Below are positions 32,995-64,000 of a DNA stretch of 64,000 nt, piece by piece. The number at the start of each line of letters is the position of its first letter. Positions within the stretch are counted from its first letter, which is position 1. Below the pieces are notes generated by a model that did no database searches, was not told the DNA's origin, and saw only the letters and a program-made list of their open reading frames with translations. Source of the DNA: Cyanophora paradoxa CCMP329 (lineage: Eukaryota; Plantae; Glaucophyta); the NCBI GenBank assembly GCA_004431415.1, contig QPMI01000078.1, positions 124,001 through 188,000 on the forward strand. Reading direction: 5' to 3'. Made by a program: the position numbers and the translations under genes.

Positions 32995-33850
32995 CAGGCG
33001 GGCCAGGGGCGGATCCGGAGGACGTGATTCATGGCCCCCGATGCCGCCATCTGCGGCGCACGGCCCCCGGCCCCGCGTCAGCGGAGGCCGGCCCCGAAGA
33101 CGGCGGGGGGACGGGCGGGGCGGGCGGGGCGGGCGGGCCTGGGCGAACTGGGCCCGGGGCCCCCTCAGGGTCCGCCTCCATCCCGAAGCTCGCCACGTCC
33201 TGAGCGACGGGGCGGGGCGGGGTCGGCCGGGGCGAGGGGCGGGGGGCCGGCGGGGCGGGCGGGGCGGCCGCGGGGCACCCGCTTGTGGACGGCGCACCCA
33301 CGCCGCGCGCAGCGAAGCGCAGCGCAGCTCAGCTCGGCTCAAGCAGCCGAGGCTCGGAGCGGGGCGCTGCCGCGCGCGCTGCGCCGCCTCCAGCACCAGC
33401 GCCCCGCCCTCCCGTACCCCTTCGCCCGCACCCCGCCTGCAGGGGTGTCAGGCGCGGGGATACCGGAGGGGTACGGCTGGGTCGGGTGGGGGGCCGGGGG
33501 GTACCTTGAGCGCGCCGAGCTTGGCGGCGGCGGCGGGGCTCTCGGCGTCGAAGGTGCGCGGGTCCCGCCCCTGGGCGTACCGCGGGTCCCGCGTGAAGAA
33601 CAGCGTTCGCTTCTGCGGGGGAGGATCGGGGGGGGGGGGGTACGGCCGCAAGGGGGCCGGGGGTACGGCGGGGCGTACCGTGTCGGGCTCGCGCTGGAGC
33701 AGAGCACCGTACAAGACCTCGAGCTCCGTGACCGAGCGATCCCGGTACCCCGCGAGCCAGGGGTACGACGCCATCGCGCGCTCGAGGGTCGTGGCAGCAG
33801 CTCGTCGCGGGGGGCCCCGTCCTGCTGCGCCCATGGCCACCTACCGCCCG
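32995..33850 (-). pseudogene. Inverted, internally deleted fragment of the DUF4062-NACHT gene
   Basis: The reverse complement matches 46920-47340, pieces of 47498-47548, then 54289-54690. Introns are retained but diverged; frames are broken. Confidence 0.85.
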
Positions 33851-33976
33851 TTCGCCAAACGTACGGGGCGGGGGGCGGGGGGGGGGGGGGAAGGAGGGGG
33901 TATGGCAGGGAGGCAGATTAGCAAGGACGGGGAGAGGCCCGGGGGTACTCGCCGAGGCCGGTTGAGGATCCAGGCG

Positions 33977-34011
<35 letters not shown>

Positions 34012-34583
34012 GTGAGGGAGGTGGAGGGGGGAAGGGGGAGGGGGGCGGGGCGTGGGCGTGCAGGGCGAGCGCGCCTTGGCGGGGGAATGCGAAACGCTCG
34101 GCGGCCTAGGCCTTTGCCGCGAAGACCAGGAGCTTTCGAATTTGCGATCCGATGATCGAGGGCGGGTGTGGAAGGGCGGGGGCGGGGGTGGTGCACCGTA
34201 GTTTTTTAGGAGAGGAGGGGAGGGGATGGGATGTGAATCAAGGGCGGCCTTGGAGTAGGGGGGTTTCGAGGGGCCCGGGCCCCGGGGGTCCCCAAGGGGA
34301 GGGAAGGGAAAACTAGAGGGGGAATGAGGGGGGAGGAGAGGGGCCGCGGGCCGGGGCTATAGGGGTCGCGATCGATTAAAAATTCGACACTCCAGTTAGC
34401 CTAGTAGGAGGTATAGGGGGAGGAAGAGGAGGGCTCGAGAGAAGAAAGGGGAGAGAAGGGGGGCGCAAGGCCCTGAGGGGGAGGACCAAGCTTAAGGGGT
34501 ACCCGCTCGACCTGTCCGGGATACCACATTCGGAAAACCACTTCAGCTTCGAGATCCGCGCTCCAGCCCCGCCGCCGGCAGCC

Positions 34584-35214
34584 ATGCACCGCGCCGCCGT
34601 CTTCGTCGCGCTCCTCGCCTTCGTCCTCGCCATGCTGGCGCTCGCCTCCGCGCAGGACATCACGCCCGAGATCACGCCGGAGATCACGCCGACCGTCTCC
34701 CCCTCGCCGTCCCCGGGCATGGTGCGCCTCCCCGCGCCTGTACATGTACCGCACGCGCGAGAACCGCGCCGGCGGCGCCCCGCGCCGCCGCGCATTTCCC
34801 GGCGGGTTTGCCTCTTCGCGCGCGAGCTCCGGCGCGCGACGCCGGCGGGCCGGCGCCGCACGACGCGCACGCGCATAGGCCGTGCTGCGCAAAACGAAAC
34901 AACTGCCAGCGCCGGCGCCGCGGCCGGGGCAACAGAAAGCGCGCGCCTGTTCGCGTGCGCCGCGGCTGACTCCGCTTCTGCAGGAGGGCTTCTTCAGCGA
35001 GGAGGAGCTCATCACCCTGTAAGTCACCTCGCGCACGCAAGTGTGTCGCAGGCTTATTGAGGTCGGTGCGCGAAACTTGATCTCCCGCGCGCCGCCGCGG
35101 CCCGCCCGCGCGAGCGCTGACGGCGCTCGCCATCTGCGCAGCAATCGGGATCAAGATAAACTCGGGCCAGGCATCCGATCAAGTCGCCCCGGCCTGGATT
35201 TAGACGGAGCCTGA
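34584..35214 (+). CDS. Small secreted Thr/Pro-rich peptide precursor (~82 aa, 3 exons), copy 1
   Basis: Signal peptide MHRAAVFVALLAFVLAMLALASA, (ITPE)n-VSPSPSPGM | EGFFSEEELITL | NRDQDKLGPGIRSSRPGLDLDGA*. Exons are conserved in the copy at 55175-55832 while introns diverge. Confidence 0.7.
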
Positions 35215-35794
35215 TCGAATCCCTAGGCCTGCGCGCTTCCACGTAGGACTCGCTCTTAGCTTTCTTATACGTATATCCGTTTTTAGGCTTCAAGTAATAT
35301 AAACAGTCTATTCGATCTCTTTCCTTTGGCTAAGCCGTGGCTGTCGCCGCGCCGCGGCCCGCGCCGCGCGCGCGCGCGCGGGAGCGCGGGCGCGAGCGAG
35401 CGCGCGCCGGGCTGGGGCCGCGGGCGGGCCTGGTTGGGAAGGCGGGCATGAGAGATCGTCTGCTAAGTGCTCGGATCATGTACAGCCGATGCGGGATCCA
35501 GAGCCGACGCACCGACCGCGAGCGCTAGCGCTTCGCCATGGCGCTGCGTCCATTCGCTTCGGCGGCCGGCGCCGCCGGCCGCGTTCATATGCGAGGATGG
35601 CCATTTGCTAAGCCTGGAGCTGCTCTACAAACCGCCGCGGTAACGACGCGGCTTCGGCAAGTGGCGCTACGAGCGTACCGATTGTCTCGTTGAGCTGCTT
35701 TCGAAGAGAACTAGCAGCTGGTGGCGTAGCGTGGCAAGTTGGATCATCACTGGCGGGATACCGATTTGAAAGTCGCGCCTAGCCGAGAAGCGCC

Positions 35795-37068
35795 ATGGCG
35801 TACAGGACGCCGTCGAGCTTGCAGCGGGTCACCTTCTCGCAGGGATCCTACCAGCCCGAGGCCTACGAGTCGCCGGCGTATGGCGGGCGGCCGATGCCCG
35901 CCGCCGACCCTTACCGCCGCACATCCGATTTCCAGTTCGAGAGCAGCCGCTCGGCGAACTACTCACAGTATCCTCCGTCCGGCCCGCGGCCGCACCAGCA
36001 GCAGCAGCTCATCCCCGACTTCAACTCCGATCTCTTCGACTGCTGCGCCGAATCGAGCGAGACTTCAGAATGTGCGTCGTAGCTAAATTTCGAGACTCTT
36101 CTGCGATAGAAGGGACCACGCCGCCGTGGTGGACTCCCGGGAGGCGCCGCGGCGCCATCGGTTGTGCAGCGCGATGCGCCACTAGATTCGCCGATAGACG
36201 ATGTTTTCGAGCTCTTCTCGTCTGATCTCACATGCGCAGGCCTCGTCTCGTTCATCGTGCCCCCGGTCCAGGTTCGCCTACGATTTCAAACCCCGCCATG
36301 AGCGCCCCGCCGACGCGCCCGCCCCGGCTCGCAGATCGGCATCACTGGTGCGACGAGCCGTCCTAATGCCCCGTCCGCCCCGCCGACGCGCCTGACATCG
36401 ACGCCCTTGCAGAGGAGCTGCACGATTCGACGTCCTGCGCGTGCGTGCCACGCCCGCCCGCCCGCGGCCGCGGCCGCCAGCCCTCCGACGCCGCCGGCGC
36501 GCGTGCGCAGGCCCACGGCGGCGCTGACGTGCGCCATCGACCTGTGCACGGCCGGCTGCGGCACGCGCGTCATCGGCTTCATCAAGCGGTGCGGTGCCGC
36601 CCGCCCCCTCCGCCTCCGCCCTCCTGCGCGGCGGCGGCTCACGCGGCGGCGGGCCAGGCGCAAGTACATCGAAGCGTACGGCATGCAGCGCGACGCCTGC
36701 AACGACTGCCTCGCATGTGCGGCCCTGACCTCCCCGCCCCGCCCCGCCCCGCCCCGCCCCGGACCGGGCGCCCCGCCTGCCGCCAACGCCCCCCGCCAGA
36801 CTTCTGCTGCCCGTGCTGCGCCGTGGCACAGGACGCGCGCGAGGTATGCAGCACCCCCCTCCCGCCCATCCCCCGGCGCCGCCCCCCCTCGAGCGCCCCG
36901 CCCCCCGCGCAGGTGCGGATTCGTGGCAACGTGAAGATGATGATGCCGCCGCCGGCCCAGATGATGGCCCCGAACGCGGGGTACGCCGCCGGGCCCGTCG
37001 GGTACGGCTACGGCGGGCCCGCCCTCCCGCCCTCGGGGTACGGCGGCGGCCGCGACGTCGTCGTGTAG
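35795..37068 (+). CDS. PLAC8/cornifelin-family Cys-rich protein
   Basis: Spliced FNSDLFDCC...CLVSFIVPPVQIG...RRKYIEAYGMQRDACNDCLAYFCCPCCAVAQDAREV; canonical introns. Confidence 0.85.
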
Positions 37069-37348
37069 CCCCCCCGCGCCCGCATCAACCTCGGCTCTCT
37101 CGAGGCTCTTTAATCTCGAGCGCTGCTTTGCGTCCCGTCTCCGTTTGCTATGTCTTAGTAGGCCTAGCTTGGCAGGCACCCCGCGCCGCCCCGCACGACC
37201 CCGCCCTGTTCCGTGTGGCTGAGGGCTCGTGCATGTAGTAATGTGGAATGCGTGGGACCGAGACGCGCACCAACTATATGCATCCAGGAGAGAAAGCGGC
37301 GTTGACGGCTACCTAGACCGGCCTGCTAGGCGACTACTACTGCTGCTG

Positions 37349-38813: not shown

Positions 38814-38860
38814 CGTCGTGTGTTGCTACCGTACCCCGGGATTCAACACAAAGCGAAAAG

Positions 38861-40618: not shown

Positions 40619-41146
40619 GCGGCGCCCCCATAGTCCACGGGCCGCTCGCCCTCTCCGGGATCCGGCGCCTAGTGTGCGCCCCGCGAGGCTTCGGCGCTGC
40701 CCTGTCTCAATTCAGTGTAATTTGGCCGCCGCTGGGCTTAGCTTGGGCGTGTCGAGCAGTCCGGGCGCAACACGTGCACATTGCCACTCAAAGAGCGGTT
40801 TGAGCGCATCCGCATGCCGAATTCGAATTCGAAAGAGGTTTGAGATTCGTGGAACGCATGAGCACGTGCAGAGGCCAGCGCGCGAGCAGACGCATTTGAT
40901 TCGAAGTCCGATCAATTTTCCCTAGATCTATTTCATCGATGTCAATGAATGTGTAACTGACGTACTAGCTATAGCATAGTCTAGCAATAGATACCGTCAA
41001 TGGACTGACGTAGACTGATTATACGCAAAAAGGCGTCTATCAAACTGCTTAGAGCTCAACTCGCAAACAGCCAAAAAGAGGGAACCGCGCTGCACAGGAG
41101 ACCTAGAATTGAAACCTACGCCCAAGAGCTGCATTGTGGTACGTCA

Positions 41147-42407: not shown

Positions 42408-42690
42408 GGATCGCCTACGCGCGGCTCCCTGGTCAGGTTCTTCGCGTTGCATCGAAACACCAAGCCACTTCGTCCGAGAACGCGGCTTCGGGGCGCGGCA
42501 CCTTCAGATTCAGGTAGTACAAGGGACGCTCCGGCACCGATCGGAGAGCACCAGCCCCGGCGAACGGAGAGCACCGATCGGCAAGAAAAAGGACGGGGGA
42601 AGAGAATACTGTGGGGTACAGCTGATAAAACCTCCTCAGGCGCTCGCTTCCTCAGGGGCTTGTACACCTGAGGTCGGGCGCTTGCTTCCG

Positions 42691-45868: not shown

Positions 45869-46004
45869 TAAGTCGGAGACTCCGAGCGTGTCGGAGGTTT
45901 GGACACTGTCTTTTCGAATTTTTCGTCCGGACTTCCGAGCACTCTACCCGGGATCATCGGATCGAGGGAGCAGCCACAGACTAGCTATAGCTAGAAAGCG
46001 TACG

Positions 46005-49000
46005 ATGGGCTGCTGCTCGTCGAAGTCGCGCGATCTGCCCGTGCCGACGCGCGAAGTCGTCATCGATTTCACGCCGCAGCCGGGGTCGTTTGCCGCGGTT
46101 CCCGCCCCGGCCGCCCGGCCCGCCCAAGCCGCCGCGCAGCCGTACGCGCAGCAGCCTCCTTATGGCCAGCAGCAGTCGCAGCAGTACGGCCAGCAGGCTA
46201 GCGCTCCTCAGCCCGCCCGGTCGACCGCGATGCCGAGTCAGGAAATCGTGCCCAGCGGCCCGAACGCCGTGAAGGAGCAGCTCGAGCAAGTGATGAAGAC
46301 GCGCACCGTGAGAGTCTTCGTGTCGTCCACCTTCGTACGTCGCGCCCGTCCGCGTCCGACCGTTAAGCTCGGTCCTCGCGCCCCCGCACACACCGACGCG
46401 CAATTCTGTGCAGCGCGATATGCAGGAAGAACGAGATGAGCTGAACAAGGTCCGTTAGGAGCTCCGCGCAGTCCAGTCCGGCAGATCAAATCAGAGCGCG
46501 GCCGGTCACGGGGCCAACGGCGTACCGCAGGTCGTGCCGGAGCTGCAGCAGCTGTGCGCCGAGCGGGAGCTCTTCTTCGTCGTCGTGCGCAAGCGCTCCG
46601 CTCCGCTTCGCCGCCGCCGCCGTTCGATTCGAATCTCTGACCCGTAGAGTTCGTACGCGTACGCGTACAACAGGTCGACCTCCGCTGGGGAGTGCGCCAT
46701 GTCCACAGCTCCGCGGGCGCCTCTCTTGGCCTCCGCGCCTGACGCGGGCCTGCAGGTGACTGCGGAGGAGAGCAGCGGCGGCGAGGTCATCCGCCTCTGC
46801 CTTGAGGAGATCGACAGATCGAGACCCTACTTCGTGTGCATGCTCGGCGAGAGATACGGGTACCCCCGCCTTCCTCTTCCCCCACCTTTTATGCCCTGCC
46901 CGTTTGGAGAGCGGCCGGCAGGTGGGCGCAGCAGGACGGGGCCCCCCGCGACGAGCTGCTGCACACGACCTTCGAACGGGCGATGGCGTCGTACCCCTGG
47001 CTCGCGGGGTACCGGGATCGCTCGGTCACGGAGCTCGAGGTCTTGTACGGTGCTCTGCTCCAGCGCGAGCCCGACACGGTACGCCCCGCCGTACCCCCCT
47101 CCCCTGCGGCCGTACCCCCCGTGACCCCGCCCTCCCCCGCAGAAGCGAACGCTGTTCTTCATGCGGGACCCGCGGTACGCCCAGGGGCGGGACCCGCGCA
47201 CCTTCGACGCCGAGAGCCCCGCCGCCGCCGCCAAGCTCGGCGCGCTCAAGGTACCCCCCGGCCCCGCCCCCGGTCCCCGCACCGCCGTACCCCTCTCCAC
47301 GTATAACCCCCCGCAGGCGGCGGTGCGGGCGAAGGGGTACCGGGTGCACGAGGGGTACAGCAGCGGCCGCGACTTCGCGCGGCTCGCCCTCGACGGCCTC
47401 CGCGCCGTGCGTGGCTCTACCCCTCCCCGCCCCCCCCCCCCAACCCCGTACCCCCCGACGCCTCGCCGCCCGCAGGCGATCTCGGCGGACTTCCCGCGGG
47501 AGGGCGGGGCGCTGGTGCTGGAGCGCGGGGAGGAGGCGGCGCAGCGCGGGGCCCTCGCGGCGGCCCTCGTCGGCAACGTGCCCGACACGCCCGCCCTCGC
47601 CGCCCTCGCCGCCTACGCACGCGACCGTGCGCCGCGCTGCGCCGCTGCTCCCCCTGGGCTCCCAGAGCCCGGCCCGAGCGCGCGGGGCAGCGCAAGGCCT
47701 GCCGCTGGTGGTGCTGGGGGCGCAGGGCGCAGGCAAGAGCGCCCTCCTCGCCTCCTGGGCCAAGACCCTCCCCGGCAGCCTGCCCCGCGGTCCGCCCTCG
47801 TCCTTCCTCCTCTATTTCTCTCCCGCTCACTCCCCTCTCAGGGGCGGTGCTGCTGCACCACGCGGCGGAGGCCTCTTCGGAGAGCGGCCGCCTCACGACC
47901 CTCGCCCGCCGCCTCGAGACCGTCCGCCCTGTACCCCGCCCCCGCCCCTTTCGGCGGTGACGGGGGTACGCGCGCGTGCAGGCGCTGGGGCTGAAGCCGA
48001 CGGTGTTCCGGGCGGGCCAGGGCTCCGAGCTCGCCCACCTCGCCGAGCGCCACCTCGAGGCCGTGCGCCCCGTACCCCGGCCGGCTTCTCCCCCCCACCC
48101 CCCTCACCTGATCGGCCCCGCGTGCGCGCGCAGCAAGGGAAGGCGGGGAACGGGAGCCTGCGGGAGCGGTCGGAGGCGGAGGCGGCGGCCGTGCGGGCCT
48201 TCCCCTCCATCCTCGCCAAGATGCCCCCCGGCAGCGTCCTCATCCTCGACGGGCGCGCCCGTACCCCAGCCCGCTCGCCCGATCTGATCTGATCTGATCT
48301 GATCTGATGTGAGCGCAGGGCGGACTGCCTGGACCCCGAGTACCCCTTCCTCTCGAACCTGGAGTGGCTGCCCCGGCGCCTGCCCCCGGGCCTCGCCCTC
48401 GTCCTCTCCGCCGCCGCCGGACGGCCTCTCGAGGCGCGCACATGCGCTTCGAATTCGATCCTGACGCGAGCCCGAGCCTGACGCGTCGCGCAGGTCGCGC
48501 GGGAGCGGGGCTGGCACGAGGCGGCGCCCTCGGGGCTCTCGCAGGCGCAGCAGGCCCAGGCGGCCCGGGCCCTGCTCGCCCTCTCCGGCAAGAAGCTCTC
48601 CGACCCCCAGGCCCGCCCGCTAGCCTCCCTAGGCCTAGCTATAGCCGAGCCCCCGCGCGGCCGGTCGCGATCCCGAGATGACGCCCCGCCCCGCAGGTGG
48701 CGGCGCTGACCTCCCGCCCCGCCACCGCCTTCCCCCTCTTCCTCCGCGTGCGCCTCCGCGCCGCCCCCCGCTTCGCGTCCCTCTCCCTTGGCTGAGCGGC
48801 GTACCCCCCTCCCCCAGGTGGTGGTGGAGGAGCTGCGCTCGTTCGGGTCGTTCGAGCGGCTGGAGGCGGCCATCGCGGGCCTGGCGGGGAGCCCCTCGCT
48901 CCCCGCCCTCTACCGCGCCCTCGTCCGCCGCTGGGCCGACGACTACCCCGCCGCCCGCGTCCCCCAGGTCGCCTCAATCACCGTACCCCTCTTTCTTCTC

Positions 49001-50511
49001 GTTCGGCGTTGATCGGGTCGGGCCGGGGCAGGCGCTGTCGTACCTGCTGGTGGCGCCGACGGGCCTGGCGGAGCCGGAGCTGCTGGGGGCGACTGGGGCC
49101 CCCGCGCGCGAGTGGGCCTCGTTCTTCGCGCGGGCGCGCGGCTCGCTGCTGCTCCAGTCGGGGCTCTACCGGCTGGGCAACCCGTACCTGCGCGAGGCGG
49201 TGGTCGACGAGTTCGGGATGGAGGAGGGCGGGGAGGGCGCCCGCGCCGCCCACGCCGCCCTCGCCCAGTACTTCCTCGCCGTCCGCGTGCGCCCTAAAGA
49301 CGAAGCTCGATCTGATCTGATCTGATCTGATGTGATCTGATCTGATCTGATCCGCGCAGATGCCGGGGGCGCGGCGGGTGGGGCGGCACGAGAAGGAGCT
49401 GCTGGAGCACCTGCAGGGGTCGGGCGACACGGCGGGGCTCCTTCGCGAGCTCTCCACCCCGCAGGTCCCCGCCCCAGCCCCGCCCCCGCCCCGCTCGCAG
49501 AGAGCCGAGCTCAGTTAACGTTGGGCGGCAGGTCTTCGGGGAGGTGTACGGGCGGGACCCGGCGGCGCTGCACCGCCACTTCGAGTTCCTGCGGGCGCGC
49601 CTCCCCGAGGAGGAGGTCGTGGGCCAGATGCGCGCCCGCTTCCGCGACCTCGCCGGCCTCCACGCCACCGGTGCCCATCGAAGCTAAGCTACAATAAGCT
49701 AAGCTTATAATAAGCTAAGCTGAGCTAATTATAAGCTAAGCTAAGCTATTTATAAGCAAAGCTAAGCTAATTATAAGCTAAGCTGAGCTGAGCTGAGCTG
49801 AGCTGAGCTGAGCTGAGCGCGCTCTGCTTGCGTGCGTGCGTGCCCCTCAGACATGTACGAGGCGTGCGGGCGCTTCTTCGGGGACGTGGGCATGCACGCC
49901 GTGGCGCTGGCCTTCGCGGAGCTCGCGGGGGAGGCCGCCCGGGGGCGCGAGTCCCTCGTCGAGCTCGGCCGCGCCGCCGCCTCCGGCGGGGGCGCCGCCG
50001 CCCTCGCCCTGGGCCAGCGCGACTACCCGTGCGCCCTCTCTTTCCTCTCCTCTCCTCCCTCAGCTTACGCTTTCGTTTCTGACTCGCGCGGCCCTCGCTC
50101 ACGATCAGGCTGATCGCGGAGCCGGCGGAGCAAGTGGGCGCCCCCCAGATCACGGCCATCACGTCCTACTTCATGGAGAACGTAGTGAAGGAGGACGACG
50201 AGTCGCTGCCGCCCCGCGAGAAGGCCCTCCTGGCCCTCGTCAAGGAGCTCCAGAACGGGTCGATGGCGGAGCTGAGCACGGCGGCGGCGGCGCGGGACGC
50301 GCAGGCGGCGGGGATGCGCGAGGCGGACGTGGCGCCCAACCCCGAGCAGGCGCGGGCGGCCGTCACGCAGGGCCGCCTCCTCGTCGATATGGGGCGCCAC
50401 GAGGAGGCCGGGCGCCGCCTGCACGGCGCCCGCGCCGCTCTCGAGCGCGCCGGGCGCACAAAGTCGCCCCCTACCACAACGCGCGTCCCTTGCCTCCCCT
50501 CCTCGCGCCCG

Positions 50512-50546
<35 letters not shown>

Positions 50547-53500
50547 CGGCTTACTCCATCTTCGAATTCGGGATCGGCGCGCGCAGTGCCTGTGCCAGCT
50601 CGCGGAGTTCTACCGTAGCGTTGGCGATGGCGACCGTGCCGTCCGGTGAGCTCACTGACACGGGCCCCGCCTGCTCACTAGGCTCACTGGGGGAACGCTC
50701 GCCCAGGTACACGAACCTGTGCCTGTACTACATGCTCCAGGTGCCCTCGAGCCCGCCTCCACCCCCCCTCCCCCCCTCCCCACCCCCCCCCCTCACGCGG
50801 GGCGGCAGGACCCGCGCTGCGACCTCTCGTCGTGCGCCATCGCGCTGGACCTGAAGGGGGCGATCCTCTCGGCGGCCGGCGAGTTCGAGCGGGCGCTGCC
50901 GCACCTGCGCGCCTCCCTCGACATGAAGCTCCGCGTCCACGGGCCCGCCCACGTCCAGGTCCGCCCAGATCTCATCTGATCTGATCTGATCTGATCTGAT
51001 CTACGCCGGCCAGGTCTACTCGTCGTACAACCACCTGGGGAACGCGTACCGGGCGCTGGGGATGGACGGGCGGGCGCGGGAGCTGCTCGAGCAGTCCGCC
51101 GCGGGCTTCGAGGCGGCGCTGGGCCCCAGCAGCCCGGCCCTCGCCGGCGCCCTCAACAACCTGGCCCTCGTCCTCCACGCGATGGGGCGCCCCGAGGAGG
51201 CCGCCGCGCGCATGCGCCGCTGCGTCGCCATCGAGGAGGGCCTCTACGGTGCCCGCAGGTCGGCCCCGCCCCCGCCCCGCCCCGCCCCGCCCCGCTCTCA
51301 CTGGTACCTTCACCCTAACCTGCGGGTCCCGCAGCGAGCGGGTGGCGGCATCGTACTGCAACCTCGGCACCATCCTCGAGGAGTCCAAGGCGCGCCCCGG
51401 CCCGGCCCGCCTTCTTCGCCCGGCCCGCGCGGCCTCTGACGGCGCCGACCTCGCCGCCCCGATGAGCAGAACCTCGACGAGGCGATCGGGGCGTTCGAGG
51501 CGGCGCGGCGGGCCGGCGGGCGCCCGTACGAGGAGGCCTGCGCCGTCGACGTCGCTGTGCGCCCCCGCTCTAACTCTAGCTCAATGTATAAGCTGGGCTC
51601 ACCCGTTTATCTACATCTTTGGCCAGTCTCACCCGCGCTCGACCCCGCAGCGGTGCCACGCGAAGGCGGGCCGGGCGCAGGAGGCGCTGCAGCTGCTGCG
51701 GGGCGCCCCCGGCGCGCCCGGCGCCGGCGATCTCCTCCGCCGCATCAACGAGCGCGCCGACCTCGACGAGGACGAGGTCGCCGCCCGCTCCCCGCCCGCC
51801 CCGGCGACGCGCATCCCGCTGGGGCAGGGCGGCGCCGGCGCCGGCCCCGCCCTCGTCTCCCGCTGCGACGGCCTCCCCGGCCTCGTCCTCGCCGCCTGCG
51901 GCCGCGCCGTCTACGCCCTCGGCGGGGGCGCCGCCGCCGCCCGCCGCCCGCAGCAGGTGGCGGCGCTGCCGGACGCCTGCCCGGGCCCGCCTCGTGCCTG
52001 CACGCCGCCGCCTCCGGCGACCGCGTCGTCGTCGCCGTCGGCACGGCCGCCGGCGGCCTCGCCGCCTTCGTCCTCCCGAAGGCCGCGCTGGCGTCGGGGC
52101 CCCGGCGCAGGGCCAGGTGGCCCTGGCGGCGGCGTCGGTTCCGGGCGCCGAGGGCCCCGTCACGCTCGTCGCGGCGAACATGGACGGCTGCCGCGCCGTC
52201 GCCGCGCACGCGGCGCCGTCGCCTGCGTCTTCGCCCTCGACGCCGCCGGCGCGGGGCGGCGCCGGCGCCGGCGGTGCTGCGCGGCCACACGCGCCCGATC
52301 GCGGCGATGGCGGCCTACTCGCGCAAGCCGCGCCTCGTGACGGCCGGCGCCGACGAGACGCTGCGGATGTGGCGGCTCGAGGGCGGGGCCGGCGGCGCGC
52401 AGGCGGCGTGGGCGGCGGACCGGGCGCAGGGCCGCTTCGTGGGGGTCTCCCTGCACGAGGAGGAGACCGACCTCCACACCGCCTCCGACGAGTGCGTGAT
52501 CGCCGTTGCTGCCTGTTTCCCTTTGGCTCGGGGCCCGAAAACGACGCCCCTGACCATGACGGGCGGGCAGTTGCACGCTGCGGAGCTGGGACGACGACGA
52601 GGGCATGTGCGCCTACGTCCGCCACGTCGCCGCCGTCCGCCCCCCGCCGTCCGCCCCCCGCCCCCCGCCCCAGCGGCGGCCCGAGCTCGGCCGGCGCAGC
52701 CGACGGGGCTGGTGGCGAGCTCGACGCTGCGGCGGGTGGCGGTGCCCTGCGCCAACGGCTCCCTCCACCTCTACTCCCTGCCCCGCCTCAGTGCTCAGAT
52801 TCGATTCGATCTTTGTGTGCCTCCGCCCTGCGCTCCGCTCCGCTGATCGCGACGCGGCCGGCAGTGTCGCTGGGGCGGTTGGAGTCGGCGGCGGCGCGGG
52901 CCGCCGGCCCCGTCCGCTGCGCCGCCCTCGCCGACTTCCAGGTACCCCCCCCCTCCCCGCAGGATTCTCTTCCCCCCTTCTGACTCCTTCCCCCCCCCCA
53001 GCTGGGGTACGCGGCGGTGACGGCGCACGCGGACGGCACCGTACTCCTCCACGCCGGCATCCTCGACAAGTGCGCCCGCCCCGCCCTGTACCTCTCCCTC
53101 CGTCGTTTCTTCAGCTCCTGCCCGTACCCGTTCCTCCCTCCGTCTCACCTCCAGATCTCCACGTACCCCTTTCCACCTTTCTCCCGCTTCTCCCTGTACC
53201 TCTCTTTCCCTTCGTCCTGTACCGCCCTTTTCGTCATGTACCCCTCTCGCTTTGCTCTCCGAGCCCCACCTAAGTCCCCTTCCCTGGCCTGTACCCCCGC
53301 CCTCGAGCTGCCTCGCCTGATCTCCCCCCCCCCCCCCCCCCCCCCCCCCCCCGCAGGGTGCAGCGGAAGGTGGTGGCGCGGGTGCAGGGCGGGGCGACGG
53401 GCGCCGCGATCCTGCCCCGCGAGCGCCTCGCGGTCGTCTCGGACGCGACGGGGGCCCTCCACGTCGCCGACTTCTCCCAGTGGCTCCCCCCCGACCAGGC

Positions 53501-54681
53501 CCGCCGACCCTCCACCATAAACTCGAGCTCGCCCAATCTAAGCTTAAGTTGTCTCGGGCTCATAATCAAGCTTCGTCTCTCTGCGCCGGTGTCGTTGGCG
53601 GCGGCGGCGGCTTAAGCTTAAGCTTCAATCTAAAGCTTAAGCTCTCTTAACCCCAATCTCTGTGGCGGCGCCGGCGCCAGCGGCATGAACTGAGCATATC
53701 GCCGCCCCGCTCTGCGCAGGCGCTGCTGAAGGAGGCGGGCGACGCGGGGGACGCCGAGCGCGACTGCCTCCGCGCCCTCGCCGGCCGCGTCCGCCCCGCC
53801 GCCCCGCCCCGCCCTTGAGGGTCTAGGCTCTAGGACGCACCGCCAGCCCCGCCCCGCCGCCCATCTCTGATCGCGGCGCAGATGCCCTCGCCGCCGTCCT
53901 CGGGCGCCTCGAGCGCCCGCGCGAGCTCCGACTACGGCGCCGGCGGCGGCGCCGGCGGCTTCTCGGCGGGGCCGCCCCCGCCCCGCCCCGCCCCGTTCTT
54001 CGGCTCCTCGGCGGCCCGCCCGCCCTCGGCCCCGGCCGGCGCGGGGCTGCCGCGGCTGGAGCCGGGCCCGCGCGGCTGGCTAGTCATGCGCGACATGTAC
54101 AAGGTGAGAGGGGCAGTGGAGGGCTCTTGCTTTAGATGTATACGTGGCCGCGGCCAGGCGCCGCCCAACGGGGCCGGCAGATCGCGGTGCGGTGCGACGG
54201 GGCTGAGGTGGACATCGCCGGCGGCTTCCGCGGCTTCCGCGACGTCCCCCCCGGCACCCACCTCGTCGAGGCGCGCCCTCCCCGCGCCCAGCGCCCCGCT
54301 GAGCTGAGCCGAGCCGAGCCGAGCTGAGCCGAGCTGCGCAGATCAAGACGCCGGAGGGGGCGTGGGTGCGCTGGGAGGTGCGCGTGCCACCGGGCCAGGC
54401 CGTCGTCTACAAGCAGGTGCCCCGCCCCGCCCCGCCCCGCCCCGCCCTCCGCTCCGACCCCGCTCCGCCGACGTCGCTCAGGACGCGGCGAGCTTTGGGA
54501 TGGAGGCGGATCCCGAGGGGGCCCAGTTCGCCCAGGCCCGCCCGCCGCGCCCGCCCCGCCCCCTCGCCTCCTCAAAGAACGCCGGGCCGGCCTCCGCTGA
54601 CGCCGGGCCGGGCGGCGGGGGTCCTCACAGATGGCGGCGTCGGGGGCCATGGAGCACGTCCTCCGCCCCTGGCCCGCCTGA
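46005..54681 (+). CDS. Large STAND-type protein: N-acylation motif, DUF4062, NACHT-like P-loop, TPRs, WD40-like repeats, C-terminal AAR2-N-like domain
   Basis: MGCCSSK; RVFVSSTFRDMQEERDEL..VDLRWGVT..LCLEEIDRSRPYFVCMLGERYG..SVTELE; Walker A GAQGAGKS; Walker B VLILDG; SSYNHLG/ALNNLA TPRs; LRGHTRPI..LVTAGADETLRMW; ~30 introns; stop 54679-54681. A few homopolymer indels. Confidence 0.85.
48281..48308. repeat. (GATCT)n intronic microsatellite
   Basis: Seen directly; ends ~10 nt before the acceptor AG at 48317-48318. Confidence 0.95.
49309..49352. repeat. (GATCT)n intronic microsatellite
   Basis: Seen directly; precedes the acceptor AG at 49358-49359. Confidence 0.95.
49681..49818. repeat. (CTAAG/CTGAG)n intronic microsatellite
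   Basis: Seen directly; precedes the acceptor AG at 49849-49850. Confidence 0.95.
50968..51002. repeat. (GATCT)n intronic microsatellite
   Basis: Seen directly; precedes the acceptor AG at 51012-51013. Confidence 0.95.
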
Positions 54682-55174
54682 GAGGCTGGCCGCCGCCCCC
54701 CGCGATCGGATCCGGGATCGCTAGTACTGGTGTCCGTGTGCCCCAGCCAGATGACACAATCACCACTTCCGGAAGCTGACCAGTTTTGGTGCAGGCTCAC
54801 TTTCATCTAGTTCAGGCCGCCAAACCCGAAGCAGCGGGCGCGGGTCGGGCCCCTGCCGGGCGGGGGTCACAAGAAGAGTTACTTGAAAATGGGGACTTTA
54901 ATTTTCGGCGCGTGCGGGGAGCCGCGGGATGTATATTTGACGTATGCTAGGCTCCGTGGAGGATCCCGGATCTGAGCGCCCCCTCCCGTGACCAGCCCGG
55001 CCGGCGCCCCGCCCCATGCATGGCGGGCCCGGCGACGACGAAGGCGAAGGCAGAGCCAGACGAAAGATCGAATAGACTGTTTATATTACTTGAAGCCTAA
55101 AAACGGATATATGTATAAGAAAGCTAAGAGCGAGTCCTACGTGGAAGCGCGCATGCGCAGGCCTAGGGATTCGA

Positions 55175-55832
55175 TCAGGCTCCGTCTAAATCCAGGCCGG
55201 GGCGACTTGATCGGATGCCTGGCCCGAGTTTATCGCGATCCCGATTGCTGCGCAGATGGCGAGCGCCGTCAGCGCTCGCGCGGGCGGGCCGCGCGCGGGA
55301 GATCAATTTTCGCGCACCGACCTAAATTAAACAGCCCGCGACACCCTTGCGCGCGCGAGGCGCCTTACAGGGTGATGAGTTCCTCCTCGCTGAAGAAGCC
55401 CTCCTGCAGAAGCGGATCCCGGAGTCAGCTGCGGCAGAGCTAGCCGCGCACGTGCGCGGCTCAGGCGCTTTGATTTGCTGCGGCGCCGGCTGTCGCCCGT
55501 TTAGTTTCGCACGGCACTAGTACGTATACTGCCGGCGCCTTTATTTGCGGAAAATTACCGGATCGCCGGCGCCGGGAAATTTGACACGCGGCGCAGCAGG
55601 GCGAGCGCGTTCCGATAGTTTAACGGTCCTCACGCATCAGCACAGGCGCGGGGAGGCGCACCATGCCCGGGGACGGCGACGGGGAGACGGTGGGCGTGAT
55701 TTCCGGCGTGATCTCGGGCGGCGGCGTGAGTCTGGGGCCGATGGATGCGGGGCCCGTGTCCTGCGCGGAGGCGAGCGCCAGCATGGCGAGGACGAAGGCG
55801 AGGAGCGCGACGAAGACGGCGGCGCGGTGCAT
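55175..55832 (-). CDS. Small secreted Thr/Pro-rich peptide precursor, copy 2
   Basis: Same three exons as 34584-35214 with an in-frame insertion (DTGPASIGPRLTPPPE). Confidence 0.7.
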
Positions 55833-56340
55833 GGCTGCCGGCGGCTGAAGCGCGGATCTCGAGTTGGTTTTCGGATTGTGGTATCCCGGACGGGTCGAGT
55901 CGACGTCGCACCCCTTGGTCCTCCGGATCCCCTCTGCGCCCCCCTTTCTCCTCTCTCCTCCGAGGCTCTGCCTCTCCCTTCTCTCCCCTCTCCCCTCTCC
56001 CCTTTAATCCCTAGCTGGAGTGTCGAGATCGACCCTCATGATTAGTCGACGCCTCCCCTATACTATGATATGTAGCAACCCCCCCCCCACTAGATCTAGC
56101 AGTTAACGTTCTAGATCTAAATGACATGCGCACTAATAGCCTGTGACCTAATAGCCTAAATGACCGATGATCATGATCATGAAACGCCGCGGCCGTGCAT
56201 GACGACCTGCGGCCGGCGCCGGCGCCGCGGCGACTTCGAATTCGAATCATATGCATGAATTCGAATTCGGGGGGTATGTCCTACTGCAACACTTTCAAGA
56301 GAATGTTCAAACTCGCATTTTTCTTTTGCATCCGGATCCT

Positions 56341-56440
56341 CGAGGAGCGCGACGAAGACGGCGGCGCGGTGCATGGCTGCCGGCGGCGGCGCTGGAGCGC
56401 GGCCGGATCTCGAGTTGTTCGGAATGTGGTATCCCGGCAT
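56341..56440 (-). pseudogene. 5' fragment (UTR + MHRAAVFVALL) of a third secreted-peptide copy
   Basis: Matches 34518-34616 and 55800-55890, then breaks off. Confidence 0.7.
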
Positions 56441-56857
56441 GCGCAGATCGAGCGCTGGCGCTAGCGGTCCCCGGGGGGCCCGGGCCCCGTTAACGTGCCG
56501 GTGCGCCCCCCGGGCCCCTTTCTCCTCTTGATCTCCCTTCTCTCCCCTCTCCCGTTTAATTTCCCCACTTCTCTCCCCTTTCTTATCTCGAGCTCCCCTC
56601 GAGCACTTCCCTATCCTGGCCCCTACTAGGCTATATATAGCCCCCTGTCCCCCCCCCGCCTTTTAATTAGGCTTCCCCTTCGAATTCTATGGCCTCTGGT
56701 TAAACGTTTCCCCTCCCTTTCCTTGAGACCCCCTCAAAGCCCCCCCTACGTACATAGTCTAAGGCCTCCCTTGATTCGCATCCCCTCCCCTCCCGGTGGG
56801 CACCGGTGCCCCCCCCCGATCGATCGCGAGCTCTCTTCTCCACCAAGCTAATCAGCC

Positions 56858-57314
56858 ATGGCTTCCCACGGCCAGGTGTCATGGCTTCCTCGCGGCGTCC
56901 GCTTCATGCTTAAACGAAAATCGCCGCAGGATCGGAGCATTCGTGACGACTCGAGCAAGGTGCGCGGCGATCTTCCTCAAGTCGACGTACGCGTCGCTTT
57001 CTCGCCCGAGACGGACGCGAAGATCGGAGGTGAGTAGTGACGCCGACCCCTTAAGCTTGTATACGCGCGTACCACTTTCTTTGACGTTCTCGTGCGCATG
57101 CGCAGCCTCGGCTGAGAGTTTAAGTAAGAGCGTCGACCAGATCGCCAAAGACTTTTCCCAGGCCACGAAGAGCTTCGACCAACTCTGCAAAGACTTCGGT
57201 CTGGGCTCGATGGCGTTTGGAGTCGGCTCCTTCCTCGGCGGGGCCGGCGTGTTTATTCTAAGCGTCCGCCGCGGCCGTGCGCCACCGAGCGCCTCGGGCT
57301 TCGGGTACCGCTGA
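56858..57314 (+). CDS. Small orphan protein (~108 aa, 3 exons) with a helical repeat and C-terminal hydrophobic anchor, copy A
   Basis: ATG, two GT-AG introns and the reading frame are conserved with copy B; C-terminal FGVGSFLGGAGVFILSV followed by RRGR. Confidence 0.6.
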
Positions 57315-57604
57315 GATTCTCGTCCTCTGGCGGCGTAGTAGTACTAGTGCCCTGTTTCTGAGCTCTTTTGCAGCAATGTTTTATCATGTGTGTGACTCGC
57401 GCGCTCTAGATCTTCAATTGCTACGCAGCCCGTGCTCTGGCGGGGCACTCTCTCAGAGTATGCAGACAAGCGAATTAGAGAGATAACACCACGTGCTTAA
57501 GCTTGGTGCTTCTCTGGGTTCTGTGCGAATCCGCCAGCTGCAGTGTGCATGTACATGTGGCGCCGTGGCACCGCCAATGCTTCTGGATCGTTCCGAAGTT
57601 CGGG

Positions 57605-59975
57605 CTAGGCGGAGGGGGCGGGGAGGGGCCCGGCGCGGGCAGCGGCGAGGAACTCGGGGATGACGCGGAAGCCGTCCTCCCGCGGGGCCGCCCGCCCAAG
57701 CTCCGCGAGCAGCTCGCGGTGCCGCTCGGAGGAGGGCGCCGCCTCCAGCCGCCCCCGCACCGCCTCCAGCTGCCGCCAGGCCGGCAGGCAGAGCGGGCAC
57801 TCGCCCCCGCTCGGCGCCCGCTCGAGGCAGCGCCCGTGGTACGCGTGCCCGCAGCCGAAGTGCGAGGCGGGCAGGTCCAGCGGCGACGCGCACGCCGCGC
57901 ACTTCGACGACTGCCGGGGGGGTACTGCGTCAGGGCTGGGGGGGGGGGGGGGGGGCGGACAAAAGGGGGGTAGGCGCGCCTGGTAGATCTCGGCGGAGGA
58001 GCGGAGGCGGTCGATGTCGGCGCGGGCGCGGGCGGTGCGCTGCCGGAGGGCCTCAGCGGCCGCCCCCTCGGCCTCCGCCACCTCGCGGCCCCAGGCGAGG
58101 GTCTTGGAGAGGTACCCCCGCACGTCCCCGAGGGTCAGGCCGCCCTCGCCGCCCTCGGCCGCGCCGGCGGCGAGGGCGCGGAAGAGAAGGAGCGGGGAGA
58201 GCGCGCCCGTCGCCTCCACGGCGTCCAGGGCGCGCGCGAGGTGCCCCGGGAAGCGCCGCGCGTTGCGGGCGAAGAAGCGCAGCGCGGCGCCCCAGGCGTG
58301 GGGGTCCGGGGCGGGGGCCCCGGGGGCGGGGCGGCGCAGGCGGCGAGGACGGCGTCGGCGTCGGCGGCCTCGATGTGGAGCCGCAGCAGCTCCCGGCGCT
58401 GGCCCAGGCGGCCCAGCAGCGCCACGAGGCCCGGCCGGAAGGCGAAGGCGTGGCAGAGGAGCAGCCCGTGGTGCGGGTCGAGGCCCGAGGCCGGCGCCTC
58501 CTCCGCCATGCGCGCCGCCCGCGCCCGCGCCCCCTCCGAGCCCTCCTGCAGCAGGCACTCGAAGAGCGCGTTCGCCACGCGCGCGGGGGGAGGCCCCGCG
58601 GCCGCCGCCGCCGCCGCCTCGAGGAACGAGAGGAGCTCCGCGCCGTGCTCGGGGCCGAAGAGGGGCAGGAACGGCTCCGGGTCCGCCCGCTGCCGCCGCG
58701 CCGGCGCCGGCGGGGTCGCCAGCGCCGGCGGGAGGGCCCGGCTCGAGACGGGGCGGGAGGAGGAGGAGCCGGAGGGGCGGCCGGCGGCCGGGGCGGGAGG
58801 GGCGAGGAGGCGCCCGAGGGCCGCCGAGGGCGCTGGCGGGGGCCGGGGGCGGCGGGGCGCTGGCGAAGTTGCTGCGGGCCGCGTCAGGCGCGCGGGGGCG
58901 GGGCGGGCCGGGACGAGGCAGAGCCCGCCGCGCACCCCGAGACGAGGTCGACCAGGAGGCCCGTCGCCTCCGCCGGCAGCTGCCGAAGGAGCTCCCGCCC
59001 GAACCTGCGCCGCCGTCGGCCGGCGCGGCGCGGAGCGGAGCGCTTTGCGGGGCGGGGCTGAAGAGGCGCACTGGAGGGCGTGGGCGAGGGCGGCGTCGAA
59101 GGGGAGGCGCCGGAGGTGGGCGAGGGCGGCGGCCGCGTCGCGCAGCTCCTCGAGCTGGATCCGCAGGTAGGCGGCGTGCAGGCCGTGCCGCCGGGCCAGG
59201 TAGAGCGCGTGGCTGTGCAGGCCGGCCGCCGAGCACGCCGCGATCGCCGCGCGCACGTCGAACGAGTGCCGCGCGGCCCCCTTCTCCTTCTCCTTCTCCT
59301 TCTCCTTCTCCGCCTGCGCCGCCGGTGAGGCGCGGGCGTGAAGCGGGGACAGAGAGGCACGCGGGGCGGACCTCGAGGTCCGACTTGCGGCCGGACTTGC
59401 GGCCCGAGCGCTCCGGCGAGCCGCTGCGGCGCGGCGCGAGCCGCCTCCGCGAGCGCTGCGAAGCCGGCGGCGGCGGCTGCTCGCCCTCCGCCGCCGCCGC
59501 GGAAGGCGCCTTGGCGGCATCCGGCGCCTCCTCCGCCCCCGCCTCGTCGCCCTCGCTGCCGCTGCGGGCGTCGGCGGCGGCGGCGGCCTCGGCGGCCTCC
59601 TGGTCGGCATCGGCGCCCTTGCGGCCGATGAAGCGCGCCAGCCGCTCCGTGTCACGCAGCGGCGCGCGCGCGCGCGCGCTCCCGGGCCTCAGCGGACGAC
59701 GGGCGGGAGCGAGGAGCGTTCTGTTACCTTGACGTAGCACTGGAGGAGCAGCGTGGTGTGCTCGCCTGATGCTCCTTTGCACAGGTGAAGCGTCTCCAGG
59801 AACTTGGTGAGGTTCTCGATTTGCGCATGCCGCGGCGCGCGCCCACACGGGTGACGTTAGATGGGAGGGGGCGGGCCCGGCTGCGGCGCGCGCCTTGCCG
59901 CGCCGCCGTAGATCAGGCGGCGGATGACGCGGGACGACTCGCCGTGCGGGATCGGCGGGCCAGCGGGGCCCGCCC
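57605..59975 (-). pseudogene. VPS11: 5'-truncated VPS11 duplicate
   Basis: Same C-terminal exons as 61284-63645; similarity stops at ~59978, so the N-terminal half is missing; upstream splice acceptors are altered. Confidence 0.75.
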
Positions 59976-60538
59976 CCGCCCAAATGCAGATGGAGATCAT
60001 GATACAGGCGCAGCTTAGCGCCAGCGCAGCATGTGCGCAAGCATTTAATGCGCATCGAAGCGCATGCAAAATGCACCGGCCCCCCAAACGGCAAGAAGTC
60101 GACGCGCTAAAAGCTTAAATTTCGATCACTCGGTTCGCGTTCAGCCGCGTTCGCGAAGCCTGCGTCGTTTTCTGGGCCGGGGATGCCAACGGTGGCGATT
60201 GCGCCCTACCCCGGTGCCACTTTTGCCCCGGCGAATGCGCTTTACCCCCGGTTGCAAAAAAACGCGGTGAAGGGAGACCAGCTGGCATGAGTGAAGGGCA
60301 TGGCTGCACCGTGCTTACTGCGCAGTGAAACGCATCACACTCGGCGCCAGACCTTCGCCGTCCGGTACGTGCAGCCCTGACCGGTGCGCTCCGCCCGCCC
60401 GCGGCGCTTGGCATGCGCGTGCGATGGAGCTCATCGTTCGAGCAGGCCAGCCGCGACCTCGCGGATCGCGGCATCGCTGCGTTCGCGGCATCGCCGCGCT
60501 CTCAGATCTTCTCCTCTTCTCCACCAAGCTAATCAGCC

Positions 60539-61000
60539 ATGGCTTCCCAGGTGCGTCGCCAGGGCCTCGCAGCGTCCGCATACATGCGTGAACGAATCGC
60601 CGCAGGATCGGAGCATTCGTGACGACTCCATCAAGGTGCGCGACAAGGTGCGCGGCGATCTTCTTCAAGTCGACGAGCTCGAGATGTTTTCCGCACGCGC
60701 TTTCTCGTCCGAGACGGACGCCAAGATCGGAGGTGAGTGCTGACGCCGACCCCTCCACCACTTTCGTTGACGTTGTCGTGCGCAGCCTTGGCTGAGAGTT
60801 TGACCAAAGACGTATCCCAGGCCACGAAGAGCTTCGACCAGGCCACGAAGAGCTTCGACCAAGTCTGCAAAGACGTCGGCCTGGGCGCGAAGGCGCTTGG
60901 ATTCGGCTTTGGAGTCGGCTCCTTCCTCGTCGGGGCCGGTGTGTTTATTCTAAGCGTCCGCCGCGGCCGTGTCCCACCGAGCGTCTCCGGCTTCGGGTGA
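60539..61000 (+). CDS. Small orphan tail-anchored-like protein, copy B
   Basis: As copy A, with a duplicated QATKSFD heptad. Confidence 0.6.
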
Positions 61001-61283
61001 GCTTATCGTCTGGCTCCGTGGTAGTGCCCTGTTGCTGAGCTCTTTCGCAGCAATGTTCCATCGCGTGTGTGACGCGCATGCTCTAGATCTTCAACGGCGC
61101 ACGTGCACGCAGCAAATTAGAGAGTTAACAGAGTCTCTCAGAGTATGTAGACAAGCGAATTAGAGAGTTAACAGCATGTGCTTGTTGCTTCTGTGGGTTT
61201 TGTGCGAATCCGCCAGCTGCAGTGTGCATGTGCATGTGACGCCGTGGCACGGTCCGTGCTTCTGGATCGTTCCGAAGTTTGGG

Positions 61284-64000
61284 CTAGGCGGAGCTCGAGG
61301 GGGCGGGGAGGGGCCCGGCGCGGGCGTGGGCGAGGAATTCGGGGATGAGGCGGAAGCCGTCCTCCCGCGGGGCCGCCCGCCCCAGCTCCGCCAGCAGCTC
61401 GCGGTGCCGCTCGGAGGAGGGCGCCGCCTCCAGCCGCCCCCGCACCGCCTCCAGCTGCCGCCAGGCCGGCAGGCAGAGCGGGCACTCGCCCCCGCTCGGC
61501 GCCCGCTCGAGGCAGCGCCCGTGGTACGCGTGCCCGCAGCCGAAGTGCGAGGCCGGCAGGTCCAGCGGCGACGCGCACGCCGCGCACTTCGACGACTGGC
61601 GGGGGGGTACTGCGTCAGGGCTGGGGGGGGGGGTGGGAAGAGGGGGTAGGCGCGCCTGGTGGATCTCGGCGGAGGAGCGGAGGCGGTCGATGCCGGCGCG
61701 GGCGCGGGCGGTGCGCTGCCGGAGGGCCTCGGCGGCCGCCCCCTCGGCCTCGGCCACCTCGCGGCCCCAGGCGAGGGTCTTGGAGAGGTACCCCCGCACG
61801 TCCCGAGGGTGAGGCCGCCCTCGCCGCCCTCGGCCGCGCCGGCGGCGAGGGCGCGGAAGACAAGGAGCGGGGAGAGCGCGCCCGTCGCCTCCACGGCGTC
61901 CAGGGCGCGCGCGAGGTGCCCCGGGAAGCGCCGCGCGTTGCGGGCGAAGAAGCGCAGCGCGGCGCCCCAGGCGTGGGGGTCCGGGGCGGGGGCCCCCGGG
62001 GCGGGGCGGCGCAGGCGGCGAGGACGGCGTCGGCGTCGCCGGCCTCGACGTGGAGCCGCAGCAGCTCCCGGCGCTGGCCCAGGCGGCCCAGCAGCGCCAC
62101 CAGGCCCGGCCGGAAGGCGAAGGCGTGGCAGAGGAGCAGCCCGTGGTGCGGGTCGAGGCCCGAGGCCGGCGCCTCCTCCGCCATGCGCGCCGCCCGCGCC
62201 CGCGCCCCCTCCGAGTCCTCCTGCAGCAGGCACTCGAAGAGCGCGTTCGCCACGCGCGCGGGGGGCGGCCCCGCGGCGGCGGCGGCGGAGGCCTCGAGGA
62301 ACGAGAGGAGCTCCGCGCCGTGCTCGGGGCCGAAGAGGGGCAGGAACGGCTCCGGGTCCGCCCGCTGCCGCCGCGACGGCGCCGGCGGGGTCGCCAGCGC
62401 CGGCGGGAGGGCCCGGCTCGAGACGGGGCGCGAGGAGGAGGAGCCGGAGGGGCGGCCGGCGGCCGGGCGGGGAGGGGCGAGGAGGCGCCCGAGGGGCCGC
62501 CGAGGGCGCTGGCGGGGGCCGGGGCGGCAGGGCGGCGGCGAAGTTGCTGCGGGCGGCGTCAGGCGCGCGGGAGCGGGCGGGCCGGGACGGCACAGAGCCC
62601 GCCGCGCATGCGCACCCGAGACGAGGTCGACCAGGAGGCCCGTCGCCTCCGCCGGCAGCTGCCGCAGGAGCTCCCGCCGAACCTGCGCCGCCGTCGGCCG
62701 GCGCGGCGCGGAGCGGAGCGCTTTGCGGGGCGGGGCTGAAGAGGCGCACTGGAGGGCGTGGGCGAGGGCGGCGTCGAAGGGGAGGCGCCGGAGGTGGGCG
62801 AGGGCGGCGGCCGCGTCGCGCAGCTCCTCGAGCTGGATCCGCAGGTAGGCGGCGTGCAGGCCGTGGCGCCGGGCCAGGTAGAGCGCGTGGCTGTGCAGGC
62901 CGGCCGCCGAGCACGCCGCGATCGCCGCGCGCACGTCGAACGAGTGCCGCGCGGCCCCCTTCTCCTTCTCCTTCTCGGCCTGCGCCGCCGGTGAGGCGCG
63001 GGCGTGAAGCGGGGACAGAGAGGCACGCGGGGCGGACTTCGAGGTCCGACTTGCGGCCGGACTTGCGGCCCGGGCGCTCCCGCGAGCCGCTGCGGCGCGG
63101 CGCGAGCCGCCTCCGCGAGCGCTGCGAAGCCGGCGGCGGCGGCTGCTCGCCCTCCGCCGCCGCCGCGGACGGCGCCTCGCCGCCCTCGGTCGCCTCCTCC
63201 GCCCCCGCCTCATCGCCCTCGCTGCCGCTGCGGGCGTCGGCCTCGGGGGCGGCCTCGGCGGCCTCCTGGTCGTCGTCGGCCCCCTTGCGGCCGATGAAGC
63301 GCGCCAGCCGCTCCGTGTCACGCAGCTGCGCGCGGGCGCGCGCCCGGGCCTCAGCGAACGACGGGCGGGGGGCGAGTAGCTTTCTCTTGCCTTGACGTAG
63401 CACTGGAGGAGGAGCGTGGTGTGCTCTCCCGAGGCCCCCTTGCACAGGTGCAGCGTCTCCAAGAACTTCTCGAGGTGCTCGATCTGCCGGTTGGATACAC
63501 GCGCGCGAAGTTAGATGAGATGAGTCAGATGGGAGGGGGCGGGCCGAGCTGGAGATTGCGGCGCGCCTTGCCACCGTCGACCAGGCGCCGGATGACGCGG
63601 GACGACTCGCCGTGCGGGATCGGGGGGCCGGCGGGGCGCGCCCCCGGCTGGCCGGCGTCCCCCTGGGGGTACCGCTGCGCCGCCTGCGCGGCGTGCTGGT
63701 AGAGTGCGAGGGACCACTGCTGCGCCGCGCCGTCCAGTCGCCCGTCCTGCCGGCGGCGCGTCGGGGCGGCGCAGAGCGGCGGAGCGGGCCCGGGGCGGCG
63801 GGGCGGAGCGGCGGGGAGGCGGTGGCCGCGCACTCAAGGGGAAGGGGGAGGGGGGGGGGGGGAGAGGGGGGGGGGGAATCGCACTCGGAGAGGTGGTCCC
63901 CGAATTTGCGGTGGACGGCGGCGAGGAGGGCCGGCGGGGCGCCGTGCGTGCGAGCCACCGCCAGCGCCGTCGAGTACTGGTGCGCTGCCCCACCGCCCGC
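61284..64000 (-). CDS. VPS11: Vacuolar protein sorting 11 (HOPS/CORVET core subunit), 3' part; 5' end lies beyond the window
   Basis: HRKFGDHL..SRVIRRL..LETLH..HTTLLLQCYVK|LRD..LYLARRHG.H..YLRIQLE (clathrin-repeat region); KCAACASPLDLPASHFGCGHAYHGRC..ECPLC RING; Vps11_C-like tail. A few 1-nt indels in G/C runs. Confidence 0.88.

Follow-up and report, generated by a model that had tools for sequence, protein, structure and literature searches.

Transposons of the CACTA superfamily make 3-bp target-site duplications (TSDs) and have C...G (CACTA) ends (PMC3193017; PMC6379663), and at a TGG target in carnation a CACTA element left the footprints TGGCCGG and TGCATGG (PMC3859356). Hairpins formed on the flanking DNA have been demonstrated for hAT, Transib, RAG and Muta1 (PMC5499845), palindromic footprints with microhomology are described for Ac/Ds (PMC5873905), and PIF/Harbinger elements combine a fixed target with precise repair (PMC4561436). 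Here we analyse palindromic scars in a 64-kb window of the glaucophyte Cyanophora paradoxa CCMP329 (contig QPMI01000078.1, positions 124,001 to 188,000; coordinates below are those of the window), a eukaryotic stretch with a GC content of 67 percent that is dense in introns and contains a long interspersed nuclear element (LINE) block, a young long terminal repeat (LTR) element, host genes and several duplicated segments. The signature is a 9-mer, T-rc(T)-T, made of a triplet T, its reverse complement and the triplet again, and thus 6 nt longer than the bare triplet. A second class, T-C-rc(T)-G-T, goes beyond the original prediction made on this DNA. These scars are real and genome-shaping, and most likely they are left by the excision of CACTA-type elements.

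T-rc(T)-T was found 316 times in the whole window, compared to 55-100 copies expected under Markov models of orders 1-5, so that the predicted enrichment over a Markov background was recovered by counting within the window. After removal of the LINE block and of CG repeats, 265 copies remained for 41 ± 8 expected, and in the same filtered analysis the distances between palindrome centres peaked at a spacing of 3 (276 pairs vs about 60). In 19.6 kb of intergenic-type DNA we counted 201 exact copies for 15-24 expected and 449 one-mismatch copies for 238-319 expected, and exact motifs of both classes together occupied 8.8 percent of the bases. Per kb, intergenic DNA held 4-14 A/T-containing clusters and conserved genes 0-2; the LINE block, which serves as an internal negative control, was near background with 0.3, and the LTRs had 0. 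The densest stack (9271-10455) held 14 such clusters per kb and an iterated six-unit run at 9625-9642, while the intergenic stretch at 54682-57600 held 8 per kb, with motifs of the C/G class at 55958, 56060 and 56623. Motifs were also present in the introns of several genes, in agreement with the claim that they pepper introns and spacers alike; an early impression that introns were spared was abandoned on these grounds. One-mismatch copies are in excess and young transposable elements are almost motif-free, as would be expected of an ongoing and cumulative process, and the density pattern is that of such a process when selection and age filter it.

The geometry of the motif is strict. In a scan of unit lengths only 3 was enriched (178 vs 15), lengths 2 and 4-9 being at background, and the arms ended at exactly 3 bp (extension 55 vs 53 and 57 vs 53 expected). 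The triplet itself varied, 28 of the 32 triplet classes being present in intergenic DNA, and a variable triplet within a constant geometry is what had been proposed. Flanks were near background and asymmetric, with a weak bias and a mild preference for C at -1. Up to 12 nt from collapsed sites, reverse complements of T were not in excess (30 vs 47 ± 5), indicating that no prior inverted repeat is required. The second class, about 1 in 9, was found 25 times for 3.5 expected, and 19 times for 0.8 when only A/T-containing triplets were considered; a further count gave 23 for 0.9. Spaced forms with G/C or A/T spacers, one-sided forms and hAT-type products with units of 3-9 were all at background, and 5-nt partial forms showed a mild excess (75 and 64 vs 35-42, about twice background). 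The bases adjoining T-C-rc(T)-G-T vary, and its C and G are therefore not copied from the flank. For the same reason we rejected the idea that this class is the hAT-like footprint of a 5-bp CNNNG/GNNNC target, in which the neighbouring bases would be fixed.

Comparison of paralogous segments revealed single scars present in one copy and missing in the other. The seven 9-mers reported by the original prediction were all located at their positions, and five of the seven stood as clean +6 cases. Three of them are GGA at 33011-33019, which lies in a rearranged fragment and is missing at 54662-54665, the end of an intact gene; GCA at 55151-55159, missing at 35230; and GAG at 61291-61299, missing at 57612 between identical flanks. 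In the two others, AGT at 57340-57348 (missing at 61022) and CTT at 57496-57504 (missing at 61181), the flanks carry 2-3 substitutions. The remaining two could not be kept as clean. The +6 at 57096 belongs to a four-unit palindrome run (57093-57104) and is ambiguous, being equally a plain tandem duplication since the shorter allele at 60779 is already a 6-bp palindrome, and GCA at 62606-62614 is a net +5 relative to 58932, with a one-base difference in the adjoining C run. A few scars (62606, 56437 and similar ones) are paired in this way with one base fewer in an adjoining C/G run (net +5); either the homopolymer slipped by chance or repair took a minor variant form.

Further T-rc(T)-T scars were GGG at 33150-33158 (with one extra base in the run; missing at about 54520), CCA at 33831-33839 (missing at about 46925, in an exon of an intact gene), AAG at 34488-34496 (missing at about 55916), GTC at 55899-55907 (missing near 34503), TCC at 55922-55930 (missing near 34480) and CCG at 7244-7252 (missing near 6345). 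Two decayed scars with one mismatch each, TCG at 6255-6263 and TGA at 7304-7312, were carried by one copy of three, and decayed polymorphic cases were also seen at 57306 and 57417. The second class was represented by AGG at 34468-34478, missing in the paralogue near 55934, where the lengths balance (+8 here vs +6 at 55922), and by TTC at 57591-57601, an older event common to the paralogue, in which one substitution falls within the motif.

A gap-by-gap search of eleven paralogous pairs returned 57 clean indels of 2-15 nt. Seventeen of them were 6 nt long, with neighbouring lengths at 2-5, which is the spike that had been anticipated between paralogues. Six of the 17 matched the motif exactly and three or four with one mismatch; random 6-nt removals collapse a motif in 2.4 percent, giving P = 1.7e-6 for six exact cases. 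The cases that could be polarised are insertions. At 6255 and 7304 the extra bases were found in a single copy of the three compared, at 33011 and 33831 they were present in the rearranged fragment and absent from the intact gene, and at 57496 the depth of contigs without them was 3.4-4.4 times that of the single-copy contig in which they occur, although these deeper short-allele copies may form one recent clade. Between 56833-57620 and 60514-61305 we counted 72 substitutions and four exact events, or up to eight if decayed and compound ones are included. Short-read contigs from four runs showed zero differences across 57250-57551 and 55816-56862, and a contig from run X11 also showed none across 54462-55679. 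Among the seven predicted cases this check covers 55151, carried by the X11 contig, 57340, seen in four runs, and 57496, whose extra bases were all matched by read contigs; these and many further motifs are thus not assembly errors. Since a single strain is probably the source of all four runs, and the assembly may have drawn on one of them, they exclude assembly error and make no population variation visible.

We consider it probable, with good though not full confidence, that both motif classes are excision footprints of CACTA/En-Spm-type elements with their 3-bp TSD, a culprit that we infer from the scars. By analogy, the process would work like the formation of a RAG-type hairpin footprint, and its assignment to CACTA is likely. 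Insertion of the element would duplicate the target triplet T. At excision, the transposase would nick the element boundary and, in the manner of RAG, Transib and Muta1, seal both flanks into hairpins without a loop, and a host nuclease would then open the hairpins so that each end carries T and rc(T). Joining through the ever-present microhomology would yield either T, which is precise and invisible, or T-rc(T)-T (+6), at any opening point. The minor class, T-C-rc(T)-G-T (+8), would be the visible outcome if an element with C...G ends were first nicked one base internally at both of its ends. What the window shows directly is the insertions with their geometry, density and spread of ages and, in several cases, their polarity. 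Under a steady flux of transposons, a lineage that persists for long would gather scars wherever selection tolerates them; in one paralogue pair there are about 4-8 for every 72 substitutions.

We enumerated the joins available to two ends that each carry T and are hairpinned and opened 2-5 nt beyond the tip. With a boundary nick, the joins that were always available were T and T-rc(T)-T; when the nick was moved one base into an element ending in C...G, this pair became T and T-C-rc(T)-G-T. This demonstrates sufficiency and is no proof. The products are uniform because the target duplication itself supplies the microhomology wherever the hairpin opens, and as mixed products are not enriched, two enzymes or families of fixed chemistry are likelier than one sloppy enzyme. 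Were a stagger resolved ahead of fill-in, 3 nt would be inverted and none gained, so that the duplication would have to pre-exist, as it does after a real insertion. If mutation rates between 1e-10 and 1e-9 per base are assumed, and free DNA is put at 40 Mb, about 3e-4 to 3e-3 visible events would be required in each genome and generation, which is modest and within reach of an active family with short-lived insertions; with such insertions, no element need occur in a given 64 kb. A bolder extension, to which we give rather low credence, would make transposon traffic a leading mutational force in this glaucophyte, with palindromes arising at about one tenth of the substitution rate, and T-C-rc(T)-G-T the mark of an undescribed cleavage geometry combining a nick one base inside the element with a flank hairpin; at its furthest, the major class would be the work of a host enzyme that needs no element and itself makes staggered cuts, forms hairpins and joins the DNA again.

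The scars share with CACTA/En-Spm elements (carnation dTac1, dahlia Tdv1 and Arabidopsis Pack-CACTA1a) a variable 3-bp TSD and reverse-complemented TSD bases centred exactly on the junction, the fixed C and G of the minor class may correspond to the C...G ends of these elements, and the two carnation footprints may be regarded as partial loop-less versions of the scar described here. Published CACTA footprints are few, whereas here two complete symmetric products dominate and fill about 9 percent of intergenic DNA, and among the published footprints compared we found no class that retains one terminal base per side. Flank hairpins, host opening and microhomology joining are also features of the P-nucleotide footprints of hAT elements (Ac/Ds, Hermes), and to this extent the hAT parallel drawn by the original prediction is an analogy. 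The hAT geometry itself does not apply, since those elements have an 8-bp TSD and palindromes centred on the complement of the element-adjacent base, and in our enumeration a hAT-type nick, one base into the flank, yielded neither product but other ones, which are not enriched. RAG coding joints, Transib and Muta1 (a Mutator-like element) likewise involve a loop-less hairpin on the flanking DNA, Muta1 being repaired mostly precisely through its TSD, but their TSDs measure 5 bp, 8-9 bp or are lacking, and such unit lengths are at background here. In PIF/Harbinger elements (mPing) the 3-bp TSD also serves as microhomology; in contrast to the palindromic gain at any triplet seen here, they use a TTA/TAA target and a hairpin-less staggered cut that is repaired precisely, and only 3 of 305 motifs were TAA/TTA, which does not fit that target. 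Small inverted triplications (FEN1/rad27) and inverted-repeat amplification that is origin-dependent (ODIRA) have the same direct-inverted-direct layout, but are about 50 times longer and variable, with spacers and prior inverted repeats.

Several points weigh against excision by CACTA-type elements. Scans of the window for terminal inverted repeats (TIRs) with TSDs, short CACTN ends included, gave chance or paralogy matches only, Pfam scans of 28 open reading frames (ORFs) of the window detected no transposase domain, and no trio of full, empty and footprint alleles was seen in the window. That no causal element would be visible there had been correctly predicted. To our knowledge, CACTA chemistry has never been reconstituted. 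The published plant footprints are heterogeneous and partial, the scars here being far more uniform, and the major class holds no element-derived base and cannot by itself name the enzyme. The fixed C and G of the minor class amount to one base per side, and other superfamilies also begin with C. Finally, the main text of the genome paper reports little repeat expansion and names no DNA transposon family (PMC6704402). Insertion and excision of an element with a 3-bp TSD that hairpins its flanks, one of the two processes originally proposed, nevertheless fits every test that we ran, its link to CACTA being what we infer.

Could the major class arise without any insertion? A host or domesticated nuclease might make a 3-nt stagger whose ends are filled in, hairpinned and rejoined through the same microhomology. 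The resulting geometry would be identical and the logic of the enumeration fits any filled-in 3-nt stagger; the very high motif density and the lack of an element within the window also speak for such breaks. They leave unexplained, however, where the second class gets its fixed C and G, and call for two separate unexplained activities, the stagger and the hairpin sealing of blunt ends, and we know of no enzyme that performs both; we regard this explanation as unlikely. Less probable still is a switch of template during replication or the folding back of a flap (quasi-palindrome mutation, ODIRA, small inverted triplications or polymerase theta snap-back), by which three bases would be copied off the other strand before synthesis returns. 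Formally, what results is an inverted triplication, events of this kind have been described from yeast and from tumours (bioRxiv 10.64898/2025.12.26.696596), and the mild excess of 5-nt partial forms would agree with them. Published small inverted triplications, though, average 184/160/184 bp with a 30-bp spacer (bioRxiv 10.64898/2025.12.26.696596), whereas the unit here has a constant length of 3, either without a loop or with a fixed base as spacer, its arms are not extended, rc(T) is not in excess near collapsed sites and no other unit length is enriched. The length and spacer spectrum thus already largely refutes this mechanism. Against the second process originally proposed, template switching or plain repair of staggered breaks, stand the constant 3/3/3 geometry, the C/G spacer class and the fact that no inverted repeat was there beforehand.

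We give the least credence to the possibility that the motifs are palindromes that are old or maintained by selection, or result from base composition or noise in the assembly, and that the indels arose when slippage between the motif's two direct copies of T deleted bases. The 3-bp direct repeat of the motif could indeed seed a deletion, the 57096 case can be read as a tandem duplication, and some alleles differ in adjoining homopolymers. A tenfold enrichment across nearly all triplets is, however, unattainable by deletion, and the extra bases lie in one copy of three-copy comparisons and in the fragment, not in the intact gene; contig depth favours the short allele by about four to one, and the short reads match the window. 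This reading is refuted as the main cause, and single cases may still be deletions.

We found no description of the signature in the Cyanophora literature, the main text of the genome paper being silent on it (PMC6704402), and no genome built in this way in the literature searched, which lacked most subscription papers, among them the classic studies of Spm, Tam1 and Volvox footprints. The chemistry is known; the uniformity, the density and the C/G class are unusual. That transposons passing through a genome diversify it by the footprints they leave is an old idea, which until now rested on single loci. If the scars are transposon footprints, they constitute a major source of mutation and a record of how such transposons cut DNA. 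Across the genome they lend themselves to counting, to dating by their decay and to polarisation; they would thereby document insertions that have since vanished and allow past transposition to be estimated directly. Moreover, the two classes of product predict the nick position of the CACTA transposase, in a superfamily whose chemistry, as far as we know, has been deduced from footprints only. Scars of +6 preserve the reading frame and create 6-bp palindromes, and can in this way feed protein and promoter evolution. The motifs at 46197-46205 and 35984-35992 lie within low-complexity exons, possibly as tolerated in-frame gains of two codons.

The young LINE block (10456-24077, + strand) contains a reverse transcriptase (RT)/RNase H ORF at 17370-23666 and encloses an inverted sister element; a 16-bp direct repeat at 10440-10455 and 24078-24093 is its apparent TSD. 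The young LTR element at 24377-29824 has 302-bp LTRs identical to each other and a gag-like ORF only (27491-29038), without pol. Homologues of this ORF were confined to one proteome, that of Cyanophora paradoxa, and the protein encoded here falls into one cluster with them. Metagenome scans with the gag alignment and with a published CACTA TIR gave no match, and a 2-residue indel looked for among gag paralogues at the motif near 27982 was not seen. Nine scar clusters lie within the non-coding interior of the element, which thus copies old host-like DNA along with its scars.

The Pfam scans of the 28 ORFs detected RT, RNase H, RING and a weak TPR; the products that we take to be EF-Ts, eIF4E, PLAC8, tetraspanin, CotH, STAND and Vps11 were labelled by eye, without tool matches. 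The segment at 32978-35362 is a scrambled and inverted mosaic derived from 46861-47547, 54401-54699 and 55023-55960 (exons, introns and spacer of the adjacent gene). Judged from its sequence it looks like captured gene fragments; no flanking TIR or TSD was found in a search around it. A 3.68-kb tandem duplication (56833-59978 and 60514-63646) carries a RING-domain fragment, Vps11-like by eye, and contig depth suggests about four further copies elsewhere. In the long gene at 46005-54681, pentamer microsatellites lie close to the 3' ends of introns between 48281 and 54341.

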